Part shown: positions 24,565 through 33,509 of the stretch, piece after piece
Position numbering within the stretch: the first letter of the stretch is position 1
How the letters are laid out: each line of letters begins with the position of its first letter
Source of the DNA: Perna viridis
Lineage: Eukaryota
Assembly: GCA_037379345.1 (NCBI GenBank)
Contig: CM074519.1
Coordinates: 11,738,699 to 11,802,698 of the forward strand
Length of the DNA stretch: 64,000 nt
Reading direction: 5' to 3'
Program-made: the position numbers and the translations under genes
Notes under the pieces: generated by a model
Databases searched by the model: none
What the model saw: only the letters and a program-made list of their open reading frames with translations
Told to the model about the DNA's origin: nothing

Positions 24565-25144
24565 CTGAAAGGAGACAAAACAAAACTCATCTCTTACCCA
24601 AATAATTGTAACAAACATAAAATACTTCTACTATAAAAAAAAAATTGATAGCCTATTTCCAGAACAATTTGGAAAGATGGGAAGTGTGTTTAAACATCAC
24701 TTGGACTGTCTAGTTGTATTTGTACAATATTAAATTTAAAAACAGCTTGCATTACTTCGGCAAAATGAATTGCATTTAAGATCTAATTTGTTTGAAAATT
24801 TCAGTGCATACAACTATAAGATAGTGCATCATTGCAACTTCATAGGGACATGGCACCTGGTACAGCTAGTATGGCATTGCAGTACAAATAATTTTCATTG
24901 GCACGGTATGCCATACCTAAAATTTTGTGGAAAAAAAAACCAGTATTTTATGGCTGTCCCAAGAACCCCCAACAATGTCATTCTCACTGTACCAATCCAG
25001 AGTTGGACGCTACTCCTACCTTCTGTGTTCCTAGTTTCTAAAAGAAAATGTGGAAATACTTCAAACCTTTAAGTGGTTTCTATATATAAGCAGTCAACCA
25101 GTTGAAACTTGAATTTTCTACTCACCATATTTCCACCTTTGTCA

Positions 25145-25183
25145 CTAATATCCATTCTGGAAACTTGTAGCTATAAGTTGGCC
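25145..25183 (-). CDS. msi: Musashi/Rbp6, last coding exon (GQLIATSFQNGY*); exon continues to 25126
   Basis: Acceptor ttatctttcag|, phase 0; matches the conserved Musashi C-terminus (vertebrate PLIATAFTNGYH); TAG at 25147-25145; donor |gtgagt at 25125. Confidence 0.9.
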   Translation of the reverse strand, partial: GQLIATSFQNGY

Positions 25184-25371
25184 CTGAAAGATAAAACCAA
25201 AAATATTTTATTGCTTGGAAAAAGACAGAAAAGATACTCTGTGTCTCAGATTATCATTCTAAGCAATTGTCATACGAACGGTACCCATTTTGAAATTTCA
25301 GAATGTTAAATACAAAGCATAAAATATTTTGAAGAAAATTCAAACATTTCTGTATATGTAAATGAACAATA

Positions 25372-25503
25372 ACAATGTGAATGTGACCACAACAATACCT
25401 AGGGAGACTATATACAATGTGAATGTGACCATAACAATACCTAGGGAGACTATATACAATGAGAATGTGACCATAACAACACCTAGGGAGACTATATACA
25501 ATG
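25372..25503. repeat. 42-bp tandem repeat x3 in a Musashi intron
   Basis: acaatgtgaatgtgaccayaacaatacctagggagactatat starting at 25372, 25414 and 25456. Confidence 0.92.
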
Positions 25504-25518
25504 ATTAGTAAATCTTAC

Positions 25519-25694
25519 AGCTAGGCTGTGTCCCAGGCTGAGGGCTGTTGGTTGGGGACTGGTTGCCTGGAGATACAGACTGTCCTGGCTGTTGTAGATA
25601 TCCAAGGGACCAGGGCTGTTAGCCAGTGGTAGTCCTCGACTTGGTGAGGTAGTTGCGGGAAAGGCAGCTTGTGCCCCAATTCCATTCAGCATGG
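25519..25694 (-). CDS. msi: Musashi/Rbp6 exon (AMLNGIGAQAAFPATTSPSRGLPLANSPGPLDIYNSQDSLYLQATSPQPTALSLGHSLA)
   Basis: Acceptor ttttattgtag|, donor |gtaaga; phase 1 to 0; ANSPGP..D.Y and YLQATSPQP are conserved Musashi C-terminal motifs. Confidence 0.92.
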
Positions 25695-26361
25695 CTACAA
25701 TAAAAAAATTTATTTTAATAATACTTAAAGTTTATAATTCCTGGTTAGTTGCTCTTTCACAATATGTAACAAGACATAAAATGCTTTTCGTTCTAATTCT
25801 GAGTTTAACATGACTTTTACGATCTCTATAGAACAATTAATGAAACAAGACTTAATAAAATCTTAATCACATAGATTATAGTACATTTATACACACTGGA
25901 CTTGTAGCTTTAAAACTGGTTACCAGTATATATGTTCAATTTACAATACCAACTTAAGTTGTCCTTCTTTGTATTGAAAATGTTTATCCACCTTCAAACA
26001 ATGTGTTTGTATACTAGTTCTACAAGTACGATATATCCTACCTGCTGTCACAAATACTTAATATGAACTAGTCTTTGAATTCCCGAAAAGTTATTTCTGT
26101 CATCTTGTCGGATTCCATTACATAATTTTTATTTCATGTTCTTTTATGTGTACGCTGAAAAATTTGTCTTCTTGTGGGTGATTTTATTGATTAATATTTC
26201 AATGTTGTACCCAATGTTTTCAATCCTGCTTGGATTTTAATTCCTAACATTGGTACAAGTTTCATGTTCTTTTTTTTCTGTTTGTATTTCATCTTGAGGT
26301 TCAAGTTGGGAAATTTTTGTTTTCATTTTTTCGGGTTTTCTGTCATTAGATCCCCTCATAC

Positions 26362-26601
26362 CTGAGAGTCCTTGTGCACGCTGTGCATTAATCAGCTGTT
26401 CACTGACGCGTTGTAATGGAGAAGTAGTCATTGTATTTGGTTGTGGAGACGGCTCGCTACGTTGAATCTGTAATCCCCCTGCTGTCAGCTGACTAGTTTG
26501 GGCAGCACCTAGATCAGTAGCGTAAATGGCCGTTGGTGAGGCATGGCGATCACCGGCAGGGGAGGGGGCAGCAAGATAACTTGTGGTATAACCAGGGAAG
26601 C
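26362..26601 (-). CDS. msi: Musashi/Rbp6 exon, 240 nt (GFPGYTTSYLAAPSPAG...AQRAQGLS)
   Basis: Acceptor ctctcttattcag|, donor cag|gtatga; phase 1-1, open frame, A/P/S/T-rich. Confidence 0.85.
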
Positions 26602-29289
26602 CTGAATAAGAGAGAATATTTCTCCTTAACATTTGTGACCTCTTACAAGCATAGGAAATGTCAAATATAAAATACCATGTAGAATTTAAAGGACCTCCAT
26701 CTAATTTTATTATCCCTTATCCTCTAGAATGTAAACATTTACATACTATTAGTATACATAAAAGAAAATTTTAAATTTTTTTTCAGATGTCTAAAACTAA
26801 TTTTTGGAATAATTTTTAAGATAACTACAGACTCAATCTATACCAATATAAATTGTTCAAAATTGTAGAAATTACATTTAGTAAATTTCTGGATAAATGG
26901 TATTTTTTTTATCCTTTTTGTATTTGATGGAGTCCCTTTTGATTCATGTATAAATATGAATTTATAATTGATGGTTACCATCGTTATAAAAATAATTGCA
27001 CATTCCTATACTTTCCAGACATATCTCATCCCACCATGGCATTCCAAATGTAAAACTTTGACAAAACCACCATGGTTCCCAATCTTAGATTGTCGGAACA
27101 GTCATTATGGCTTTCCAAACTTAAATATTTGGCAAATGCAAGATATGGGAGAGAAATGTCAAATAATATATTCAGACTTGGCTTCCCTGGTTTTGCATGA
27201 ACAAGAATAAAACAAGCACACAACAAAAGGTCAGCTATATATATACATCAGATCAATTCAAGCTCTCTAACTACCAAGATTTCTAAGCTTTTCCTATATT
27301 TGGCTAACATCAAAATTAGCATTCCAATTTAGTAACTTTCCTTGCTATTATCTATCTATCAGTATTTCTTATGATTAGATATGGCTACAAAACATATATG
27401 TTAGTTTTTTGTTCTATTTTTATATTTTAAATAATAAAACTGCCGAAAGTGAAAAATCTACAGTATAAAAATTAAGAACTAAAGTTTCGTTAAGTCAGTA
27501 TTGTTACATGCAAAACACTACCAAAAGCATAACTAATGACTAATGAAAATAAAAACATCGAATTCTATAAAGCAGAATTTCATTGATATCTTTCCGTGTG
27601 TGCTTGGTTTTCTACAGTTGCATGCAAAATCAGCGGAGCCAGAATCACTTCAAGGTCATATTATCAAAGTTCAAAGGTCAAATCATCAAAGACAACAATT
27701 CAATCAAAGCTGTAAAAAACATGCATAATTATTGCATCCAATGAACAGAGCTGTTTTGTTTTTTTATATGAAAGGTTTAGGTCAAAGACAGGAGACATTT
27801 CTATAAGACAGAGTTGTCTCCCTTGCCTTATGTTCTCTGCTTCTCGTTAGTAGATGTAATCACAGAATCACATTTAACTTTTCTTACTATCCTGCAGCTG
27901 AAATAAATTTCAAACATTCACAGGAACTGTTCAAGTTCAATTTGAAAATTCAAATGAAAAAAGGTATCAATTGTTTCAATGATTCCATAATATCTTTCTT
28001 ATTTTATTCAAATATCACTTGAAATCTTGTGTAGCACTTTGAAGTATTTTCTTTTTTGTTACTCTAGATCTAGATATCACTTCTCATGAAATATTTTGCA
28101 TGGTGAAACTTAATATGACTGCAGAGGCCAAACCCTGAATACAAATTTTCAGTCATATAAATATTAACTATCTTAGACTTTTCTATAAAAATCATCAGCC
28201 CTGTTCATTGGTAAATTGATTAATAAGATTATATAACTACATCAATGGTGAAGGTTTCAGACAAATTATGGCCCATGTTTCACAAAGATAATTTTGACAT
28301 CTATCTACATATACAAATCAAGCAAGCCCTCCATCAATCCATGTTGAAATGTATACAGCCATTCTTGATAGAAAAAAAAATGTGTAACAAATATTTTCTT
28401 GATAACGGTCAATTCTATACTCAAATTTCTATTATTTTGTATCTAAAATTATTAAATATTTTTTATTAATCATGAAAATTTAAAGGTGTAATCATTTTTC
28501 TCAACAAGAACATTTCAACACATGATTAATCAAAAATTACAAACAATAAAAAAAAATACACAGCCAACCAGTTATCATAAAAAGTTTGACAAAATTTTGT
28601 TGATAAGTGTCAAAAATGGGAGAATCCAGCTGCACTTTCAACCTTCAACATGGAATGATAAAACAAGTTGACAAATTGTAGATTAAGTAACTATCACATT
28701 CATAACAAACATATACACATATCTATAATCAGCTACACAATAATATCTGAATACCACACATATGCAAATACAATATAATAACTACAGACTAAAGAACTTT
28801 AGCTTCACTGCAATTTTCATTTTTCTCTTTCTGTTGATTTCAAAAAGTCACACTCTAAACTAATTACATTTAACATGGACATATCTTGTTCTTGTTTCAA
28901 TAATGTCACATTTGAAATATTGTTTTCGTAAATTACACAGTTTTATAAAAAGATACAAAATTCATTGTCAAAATTCTTAAAAGTAAAATATTTTTAAAAC
29001 TTATTACTAGGAAAATCCCTACAGGAAGAAAATAGAAAATAAACAGTGAATTAAAAACTAAGCAAGTGTTATAATTTTCACAGCTACTTTTAAAATAGTA
29101 CATAGTTATCTTGCTAGCAGAGAAGGGGAATAACTCTGTAAGGGTATTTAACTCCACAATATGTACGAGAGAAAATACGAAAAACAATACAAATAAACTC
29201 ACAAAATACACTTTTTTATACTATTGAATGCTGGGAAAAATAAGCTTAAGCAACAGAGTAACACTAGGTGGCGCAGCATTGGTGCTTAC

Positions 29290-29421
29290 CCGCGGTGCCT
29301 AACGGAAAACCTAAAACACTCCGTCCTACACCCCGTAATGCAGCAGTAGCACTGCGGGTAGCTGCCAAAGTGCCAGGTGTCAGAGCCGCCCCAGTTGAGG
29401 AACTTAGAGCTGTTCCAAGCC
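29290..29421 (-). CDS. msi: Musashi/Rbp6 exon, 132 nt (GLGTALSSSTGAALTPGTLAATRSATAALRGVGRSVLGFPLGTA)
   Basis: Acceptor taccatgcag|, donor gg|gtaagc; phase 1-1; GC-rich island in an AT-rich intron; Ala-rich with AALRG, like the Musashi Ala-rich AAA.RG segment. Confidence 0.8.
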
Positions 29422-33419: not shown

Positions 33420-33509
33420 CTGGTGGGTAATAATAGCCAGCTGGTGCAAGAGTCGGGAAACCACGTCCATAAGGAGAATACATAGCTGGGATAGTCCCTG
33501 GAAGCAGAC
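33420..33509 (-). CDS. msi: Musashi/Rbp6 exon, 90 nt (GLLPGTIPAMYSPYGRGFPTLAPAGYYYPP)
   Basis: Acceptor ttctctttgctgcag|, donor cag|gtatgg; phase 1-1; YGRG(F/Y)P..AP..Y resembles the Musashi post-RRM segment. Confidence 0.88.

Follow-up and report, generated by a model that had tools for sequence, protein, structure and literature searches.

We propose that the intron upstream of E_b, an in-frame cassette exon of a Musashi gene, probably contains an RNA module of three elements (A, B and C), as judged from sequence comparison. Its arms B, an intronic 13-mer, and C, which spans the 3' splice site of E_b, appear to form a long-range duplex that has been kept by selection. The third element, block A, is predicted to compete with C for pairing with B. 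We analyzed a window of 64,000 nt from Perna viridis, and all features described below lie on its minus strand.

To our knowledge, control of splicing by long-range RNA structure has ample documentation in insects and vertebrates and hardly any in lophotrochozoans. Musashi itself is a conserved RNA-binding protein of stem cells and the nervous system, and the bivalve lineages compared here have been apart for hundreds of millions of years. The comparative support for the module is unusually clean: a perfect 13-bp helix at the 3' splice site has outlasted the split between pteriomorphs and heterodonts, substitutions that alter an amino acid are compensated in the intron, and a competing stem is accompanied by two invariant UGCAUG motifs. 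The module could reveal in what way RNA folding and an RNA-binding protein act together to set exon inclusion in Musashi, and it suggests that an intronic partner can constrain synonymous sites, and even the choice of amino acid, at the start of an exon. It also makes a compact model: its length is about 1.1 kb and falls to about 0.6 kb in the oyster and the venerid.

The acceptor of E_b and its intronic complement

E_b occupies positions 26362..26601 (240 nt, phase 1-1) and encodes FPGYTTSYL...INAQRAQGLS, which is part of the C-terminal region of Musashi. Both borders of the exon are backed by RNA contigs, in agreement with the original prediction, which had placed a phase-symmetric exon of 240 nt at exactly this site. 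On the downstream side E_b is spliced to the neighboring exon at 25519..25694, and the RNA contigs contain the joints 25694->26362 and 25182->25518 (cut +1). On the upstream side a loose RNA-contig end at 26604 runs on into the exon ending at 33420, which encodes ...APAGYYYPPG. In the RNA contigs E_b follows directly on this constitutive exon (33420..33509, with the end ...GRGFPTLAPAGYYYPP(G)), and since the latter sits at 33420-33509, the intron removed upstream of E_b measures ~6.8 kb. Between E_b and this distant exon, which is the partner of the E_b acceptor in the four RNA runs, lies an optional exon, E_a (29290..29421, 132 nt, AG/GT flanks). E_a encodes GLGTALSSS...PLGTA, is homologous to the segment after ...GYYYPG in oyster, scallop and Pinctada, and forms the 5'-side boundary of the intron housing A and B. 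No splicing of E_a into the RNA contigs was observed in the four runs of the window's species.

Arm C (26590..26602, RNA sense GGCUUCCCUGGUU) consists of the acceptor G at 26602 and nucleotides 1-12 of E_b, and it encodes (G)FPGY. Its exact complement is arm B (27180..27192, RNA sense AACCAGGGAAGCC), separated from it by a spacing of 577 nt in the window. All 13 of 13 positions are complementary, the helix energy is -24.7 kcal/mol, and the exact inverted repeat on which the original prediction was built could be confirmed in the letters. The B-C helix is also found in the MFE and in the centroid fold of 27250-26560, the region that had been suggested for folding. Searching the window for the 13-mer pattern with at most one mismatch, we found it in two places only, which are the two arms, and shuffles expect 0.02. 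Exact 13-mer inverted repeats within 3 kb of each other gave 62 matches across the whole window, corresponding to about 30 distinct and mostly AT-rich pairs. Because of this number the match between B and C is by itself only mildly unusual, namely in its G+C content and its position at a splice site, and its significance derives from its conservation across bivalves.

The original prediction had added two shorter blocks to the duplex, and both are present as it described them. The first of them (ctgaata, 27169-27175 with 26602-26608) corresponds to a possible helix extension. Beyond a bulge of 5 nt on the 3' side of B, UGAAUA (27169..27174) could pair with UAUUCA (26603-26608), which makes up the final 6 nt of the intron and contains the A of the acceptor AG. 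A common layout, with a bulge of 4-5 nt followed by 5-7 bp abutting the acceptor, was observed in oyster, Pinctada and venerid, where the sequences differ. With shuffle P values between 0.04 and 0.58 per lineage the block does not reach individual significance and is suggestive, whereas the other block (27151-27157 with 26618-26624) is unconserved even in the other mytilid and was dropped.

A duplex between exon and intron with a conserved intronic arm would also be provided by an ADAR editing-site complementary sequence, where the intronic complement of the exonic sequence creates a double-stranded substrate for editing of the exon, and an A-C mismatch is indeed possible three positions past the helix in the window. 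However, the exonic arm GGCUUCCCUGGUU does not contain any adenosine, the RNA contigs of four runs match the genome in and beside the arm, so that no RNA-DNA difference is seen in them, and the pairing that flanks the helix is unconserved. We therefore regard editing as a very improbable purpose of the duplex.

Conservation and covariation of the two arms

Six bivalve sequences were compared, two from mytilids and one each from an oyster, Pinctada, a scallop and a venerid clam; they represent five families and about five independent lineages. B and C were found in all six, at distances of 101-790 nt from each other, which contradicts the lack of conservation in relatives that the original prediction had named as evidence against itself. 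The introns around the two arms, including the spacers between them, are otherwise unalignable among these sequences. A blind RNAduplex search for upstream partners of the 3' splice-site block ranked B first in all six lineages, and each time B performed better than 100 of 100 dinucleotide shuffles.

The second mytilid and the oyster have arm C without any change, and scallop, Pinctada and venerid each differ by a single change in it; arm B is exactly kept in mytilid, oyster and scallop and altered in step with C in Pinctada and venerid. The venerid shows a double compensatory change, B4 C>U together with C10 G>A, by which a G-C pair becomes an A-U pair and a Gly codon in arm C becomes a Ser codon. 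The second double compensatory change is found in Pinctada, where B10 A>U accompanies C4 U>A (U-A to A-U, with Phe>Ile in the protein), and one G.U pair occurs here as well. In the scallop an uncompensated A.A mismatch leaves 9+3 bp. Over the whole B-C alignment 75 of 78 cells are paired, with 1 G.U pair and 2 mismatch cells, and double changes affect 2 of the 13 pairs. The search for covariation across bivalve orthologues, which had been proposed at the outset, thus gave a positive result, with the element in 6 of 6 sequences and two double-sided compensatory changes, the statistics being thin in that six sequences are too few for a formal covariation test.

Coding sequence at the start of E_b shows a related signature. 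Among 15 degenerate codons with an invariant amino acid in this exon, one is codon-invariant, and this is the Pro codon CCT inside arm C; both codons adjoining it in the arm have invariant third positions too. The first nucleotides of the exon could also be under ordinary splice-site and enhancer constraint, which would explain part of this synonymous conservation.

We considered whether the complementarity of B and C might be a coincidence, that is, a functionless match with a single chance origin in a bivalve ancestor, B being kept for another reason (a protein site, an intronic enhancer or the A-B stem described below) and C by coding or splice-site constraint. Plain 13-nt inverted repeats are common in the AT-rich window, B of the scallop is unchanged despite its changed C, and B is also part of the separately conserved A-B stem. 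Against this, the B-C pairs have been maintained by double-sided compensatory changes on two independent occasions, once at the cost of an amino-acid change, the frozen synonymous sites are confined to arm C, and the imperfect pairing at the base of the A-B stem falls exactly on the part in which B-C pairing is perfect. Taken together, coincidence is improbable, and the findings argue for a duplex under selection.

Block A and the UGCAUG motifs

All six lineages possess block A (27565..27642), at a distance of 295-445 nt on the upstream side of B. A sequence similar to arm C, UGGCUCCGCUGA, occupies its 5' part and is predicted to pair imperfectly with the 13-mer of B (-14.6 kcal/mol), and the remainder of the block pairs with the 5' flank of B (27193..27242, containing CAUGCAAAA and GUGUGCUUG) in a long imperfect stem. 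Alignment of the A and B blocks with MAFFT followed by alifold recovered the terminal helices only, as indels spoil the middle helices, and we therefore calculated the duplexes for each lineage separately, obtaining A-B energies of -48 to -63 kcal/mol across the six lineages. In the predicted ensembles the 5' flank of B is paired with the A side at P 0.72-0.85 in the six lineages, and the 13-mer of B is split between C (P 0.02-0.93) and A (P 0.04-0.80).

Two UGCAUG motifs accompany the stem. The first (27621-27626) is located inside block A, and the second (27507..27512), a hexamer of the Rbfox type, lies in the loop between A and B, 114 nt downstream of the first. We observed exactly two such motifs in the A-to-B interval of all six lineages, 99-123 nt apart (shuffle P per lineage 0.005-0.04) and 466-1317 nt away from the acceptor. 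The first motif is base-paired within the predicted A-B stem in all lineages. With block A and the UGCAUG motifs present, the picture shifts from the two-arm duplex of the original prediction, which had recognized the arms correctly but had missed the competing block and both motifs, to a module of three elements.

The distal UGCAUG motifs are conserved, and by predicted pairing the B-C duplex adjoins the A-B module and links them to E_b. The main role of the duplex might be that of an RNA bridge rather than concealment of the acceptor: it would loop out the variable spacer and set the A-B module with its UGCAUG motifs in a fixed position beside E_b, and a distal protein site could then regulate the exon in either direction. 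The invariant number of the motifs, their constant spacing and their distance from the acceptor fit this explanation. The B-C spacer varies eightfold, whereas the A-B distance is steady, and this is expected if pairing normalizes the distance. Rbfox bridges have already been described, for example for ENAH exon 11a/12 (Lovci et al. 2013, cited in PMC8052449), and as far as they are characterized in that citing account they share with our module a conserved UGCAUG several hundred nucleotides from a cassette exon and a long-range duplex that brings the motifs near. Relative to the same account our case differs in that the exon-proximal arm is the acceptor itself, so that bridging and masking coincide, in that one UGCAUG lies within a competing stem, and in that the Rbfox sites are putative. 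A duplex covering the AG itself should moreover inhibit the second splicing step regardless of its cargo, and the pairing of the first UGCAUG in the A-B stem is unfavorable for an RRM that binds single strands. The Rbfox sites are candidates based on their motif; a search of the genome with the Fox-1_C profile (PF12414) gave no matches, and its controls gave none either. We consider the bridge possible but rather doubtful, and it overlaps with masking of the acceptor instead of excluding it.

A and B also resemble terminal inverted repeats about 460 nt apart, as though an old MITE-like element had inserted here and left its two ends, one of them matching the exon by chance. However, the regions 27140-27660 and 26340-26700 match only themselves in the 723-Mb assembly, and because it is single-copy in this genome B belongs to no repeat family. 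The blocks have an orthologous position in five bivalve families, with covarying stems, and in 5 of 6 lineages every frame of the opposite strand is interrupted by stops. An origin from a repeat or MITE was rejected on the single-copy state of the region, and a mobile-element remnant is hardly credible. Because of the stops in these five lineages, coding on the opposite strand was rejected too. A decoy role of B, as a 3' splice site of the form CAG|G, was discarded as well, since no corresponding joint occurs in the RNA contigs and the pyrimidine tract is poor outside the mytilids. Rfam gave no match at E<=1 for 26300-27800 on both strands.

Proposed mechanism and related systems

We infer that the B-C helix forms in vivo. 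Pairing of B with C would put the 3' splice site into a 13-bp helix, possibly extended over the last 5-7 nt of the intron, where it should be inaccessible to U2AF and the spliceosome, so that skipping of E_b would be favored. The helix would accordingly lower rather than raise E_b inclusion, by masking as opposed to recruitment. Block A would form the long stem with the 5' flank of B, and since its C-like 5' end and arm C are rivals for the 13-mer, this 13-mer would be bistable between A and C. The two invariant UGCAUG motifs, one of them inside the A strand, are probably sites for a protein of the Rbfox type that biases the choice between A and C; an involvement of Rbfox at the module is presumed from these motifs. 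The interpretation given in the original prediction, a structural splice switch in Musashi, is supported: covariation was positive, and two of the three observations that it had named as speaking against it, an unconserved element and a constitutive exon, are contradicted by the bivalve comparison and by annotated isoforms of relatives, respectively.

A more far-reaching version is speculative, and we think it unlikely in its entirety. It holds that the module is a protein-gated three-way RNA switch, ancient in Mollusca and kept for about half a billion years, with coding changes of Musashi compensated in the intron. Once bound to the hexamer within strand A, Rbfox or another reader of UGCAUG would disrupt the A-B stem and release B in full, and the freed 13-mer would clamp the acceptor of E_b. 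A regulator bound upstream would thereby repress E_b through refolding of the RNA, without protein contacts.

Long-range intronic RNA structures that affect the use of splice sites were reported for Drosophila (Raker et al. 2009, PMC2724269), and conserved complementary regions were described in human (Kalmykova et al. 2021, PMC8052449). Like both of these systems, the module pairs two complementary boxes of the same pre-mRNA across hundreds of nucleotides, with one box overlapping an alternative exon's splice site; the conservation of the boxes in diverging orthologous introns and the compensatory substitutions are shared as well. It differs from them in belonging to a mollusc Musashi gene, in being conserved across pteriomorph and heterodont bivalves, and in having one coding arm, where the intron compensates for an amino-acid change. 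Our literature search returned no report of such a duplex in a mollusc Musashi.

The orthologous E_b exons measure 225, 216, 207, 231 and 219 nt, every one divisible by 3. RefSeq isoforms lacking exactly E_b exist for eight mollusc genera as predicted models (Ostrea, Saccostrea, Crassostrea virginica, Mytilus galloprovincialis, Pecten, Dreissena, Haliotis and Pomacea). By these models the exon is not constitutive in relatives; in the window's species the contigs of four RNA runs, which drop minor forms, contain the included form only and no joint that skips E_b. Competing docking-site and selector structures are known from clusters of mutually exclusive exons in Dscam1, 14-3-3zeta and others (PMC12962786, PMC6071210). 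As in these systems, B has two alternative partners (A and C) and would pair with one at a time. In contrast to them, partner A adjoins no exon, and the pairing covers the acceptor rather than lying upstream of it. E_a and E_b form no mutually exclusive cluster, since the annotated oyster isoforms comprise all four combinations of the two exons (both, either or neither).

An inverted repeat at a Musashi splice acceptor

The cassette exon E_b lies on the minus strand of the window (26601-26362), is followed by GT and encodes (G)FPGYTTSYL...INAQRAQGLS. Its open frame and the borders given by the RNA contigs bear out the original prediction of a 240-nt, phase-symmetric exon. The borders are fixed by contigs of four RNA runs, which contain the joint 25694->26362; RNA contigs also continue past 26601 into ...APAGYYYPPG, the end of exon 33420-33509. 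The gene was identified from single exon peptides, one at a time rather than as a joined spliced model: the E_b peptide matched a 430-aa protein with the NCBI name Ostrea edulis Musashi homolog 2-like isoform X7, and its nearest match was Mytilus edulis MSI (86%), which makes the gene of the window that of a mytilid.

An intronic 13-mer on the minus strand (27192-27180; AACCAGGGAAGCC in RNA sense, arm B) was predicted to be the exact reverse complement of the acceptor G and the first 12 nt of the exon (26602-26590, minus strand; GGCUUCCCUGGUU, arm C), and the sequence check agreed. Two further colinear blocks claimed to extend this pairing, 27169-27175 with 26602-26608 and 27151-27157 with 26618-26624, are also correct as sequence facts. 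Folding of 27250-26560 was a proposed check; in it the 13-bp helix belongs to the MFE as well as to the centroid structure, and the region contains no N stretches. Allowing at most one mismatch, the 13-mer pattern is found at only two sites in the 64-kb window, compared to 0.02 expected. The same window holds 62 exact 13-mer inverted-repeat matches within 3 kb (about 30 distinct pairs), nearly all of them AT-rich. Taken on its own the B-C repeat is only mildly unusual with respect to chance, and when many windows are scanned some inverted-repeat arm will eventually fall on a splice site; what sets the present pair apart is its G+C content (8 of 13, in a window with 31% G+C) and its position. 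The B-C region has a copy number of 1 in the 723-Mb assembly and thus does not represent a repeat family, and we give an origin as a transposon remnant next to no credence. That the intronic arm is an editing ECS appears hardly less improbable.

Conservation and compensation in other bivalves

For comparison we used genomic contigs with the orthologous exon from a second mytilid (L003-L008, from host DNA within vent metagenomes), an oyster (L009), a scallop (L010/L011, 94% to Pecten and Argopecten), Pinctada imbricata (L012, a named NCBI record) and a venerid clam (L013, 89% to Ruditapes). Together with the window these are six sequences from about five independent lineages, and the taxon of all relatives but Pinctada was assigned by best protein match. 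When the introns of the two mytilids are aligned only two blocks appear, and the end of one of them is exactly arm B. A B arm is present upstream of the orthologous acceptor in all six lineages, with B-C spacers of 577, 790, 165, 467, 314 and 101 nt.

Covariation across bivalve orthologues had been suggested as a check, and its outcome favours the predicted pairing: B-C is kept in 6/6 lineages, 75 of 78 cells are paired, and double-sided changes occur at two different pairs. The two mytilids and the oyster share the same B and C sequences (13/13 pairs). In the venerid, C10 G>A (Gly->Ser) is matched by B4 C>U and the helix retains 13/13 pairs; in Pinctada, C4 U>A (Phe->Ile) is matched by B10 A>U, an additional A>G change turns a pair into G.U, and the helix lacks its terminal pair. 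The scallop carries the C4 change of Pinctada uncompensated, resulting in an A.A mismatch and 9+3 bp. We also performed a blind partner search of a 30-nt acceptor block against at most 2.5 kb of upstream sequence, with 100 dinucleotide shuffles per lineage. The top partner was B in each of the six lineages (-27.5 to -32.2 kcal/mol), and its energy was every time better than 100/100 shuffles. Among the six sequences, E_b has 15 degenerate codons with an invariant amino acid, 14 of which vary synonymously; the sole invariant codon is a Pro CCT within arm C; the codons on either side of it (TTC/ATC and GGT/AGT) keep their third position too. Chance complementarity combined with an unrelated constraint, for which the repeat counts of the window leave some room, is unlikely in our view once compensation and the frozen synonymous sites of arm C are considered.

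The two extending blocks fared differently. For the second (UGAAUA/UAUUCA following a 5-nt bulge) counterparts of the same layout and other sequence were found in oyster, Pinctada and venerid, while the shuffle P is only 0.04-0.58 per lineage because of AT-rich tails and permitted G.U pairs; as a helix extension it is suggestive. The third shows no conservation, even in the second mytilid.

A predicted upstream competitor and a pair of UGCAUG motifs

The original prediction did not include block A (27642-27565, minus strand). All six lineages have it, at 295-445 nt upstream of B, and in each its pairing with B plus the 5' flank of B gives an extended, imperfect stem of -48 to -63 kcal/mol, which is, like all structure statements here, a thermodynamic prediction. 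Without the 13-mer, the best partner of B's 5' flank is still A, above all shuffles in four of the six lineages. The inner helix GCACAC/GUGUGC of this stem is sequence-invariant across the six lineages (in the window e.g. 27596-27606 / 27216-27226), and the middle helices keep their pairing with differing sequence (mytilids UUUUGCAUG/CAUGCAAAA, venerid UUAUUGCUCUG/CAGAGCAAUAA). Given these covarying neighbours, GCACAC/GUGUGC may have a sequence-specific reader besides pairing. At its 5' end (UGGCUCCGCUGA in the window) A is C-like and can form an imperfect duplex with the 13-mer, at a predicted -14.6 kcal/mol versus -24.7 kcal/mol for arm C. When the whole region from A to C is folded by partition function, the pairing of B's 5' flank with A has a probability of 0.72-0.85 in each lineage, and the 13-mer is shared between C (0.02-0.93) and A (0.04-0.80); the model therefore predicts a constant A-B stem with a bistable base.

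In all six lineages the A-to-B interval contains exactly two UGCAUG motifs, of which the first lies within strand A and the second 99-123 nt downstream, compared to 0.1-0.3 expected from shuffles (P 0.005-0.04 per lineage). A third UGCAUG (27720-27725, minus strand) lies about 100 nt upstream of A in both mytilids (about 140 nt in L003), and the oyster has an extra upstream copy also; this feature is not common to all lineages. Rbfox binds (U)GCAUG, and judging from the motif it could act at this module. The genome was searched for the Fox-1_C domain with 0 matches, and the controls likewise gave 0.

We consider it reasonably probable that B-C is a selected intramolecular helix. Formed in vivo, it would sequester the acceptor AG and the start of E_b and thereby lower the use of this exon; A would compete with C for B, and the balance would set E_b inclusion, possibly with protein input. 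The main alternative, differing in emphasis, is that the duplex serves as an RNA bridge which places the UGCAUG module beside the exon, and it is favoured by the B-C spacer varying eightfold while the A-B distance is constant. Distal Rbfox sites working via long-range duplexes are such RNA bridges (Lovci 2013, as cited in PMC8052449), and the module resembles these. It would work like conserved long-range structures in Drosophila and human (PMC2724269, PMC8052449). In the literature searched, no structure of this kind is described for Musashi or for molluscs; what stands out is that the conservation is deep, that amino-acid changes are compensated in the intron, and that one module unites a masking arm, a competitor and two UGCAUG motifs.

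Exon use and further transcripts of the locus

Upstream of E_b lies a second optional exon, E_a (29421-29290, minus strand; 132 nt, in-frame, Ala/Ser-rich, with good AG/GT flanks), with homology to an optional segment present in isoforms of oyster, scallop, Pinctada, Mercenaria, Haliotis and Pomacea. According to predicted RefSeq models, the source of the isoform evidence from relatives, the oyster uses E_a and E_b in 4/4 combinations (both, E_b only, E_a only, neither), and isoforms without exactly E_b are annotated in Mytilus galloprovincialis, Pecten maximus, Dreissena, Haliotis rufescens and Pomacea. Since the oyster isoforms show that the two exons are not mutually exclusive, a docking/selector system is ruled out. 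In Perna viridis, the contigs of four RNA runs, which drop minor forms, display E_b inclusion and E_a skipping only.

Unspliced RNA contigs cover 33448-29787 (minus strand), that is the last 29 nt of exon 33420-33509 and then the intron to about 29.8 kb; one of them, of 3543 nt, comes from run X2. They suggest a candidate read-through isoform whose 3' end would lie in the intron, with the terminus ...YYYPPGMEILELGQWYPF* and without the whole C-terminal region. The translation of 25257-25514, inside intron 25184-25518, has the repeated peptide pattern IVYSLPRYCYGHIH..., suggestive of a tandem DNA repeat (about 42 nt) in the intron between the two most downstream coding exons examined. A small extra exon (25126-25183) was observed in RNA contigs and another joint departs at 25126, so that splicing of the coding end and of the 3' UTR departs from what the long open frame 25495-25731 would indicate.
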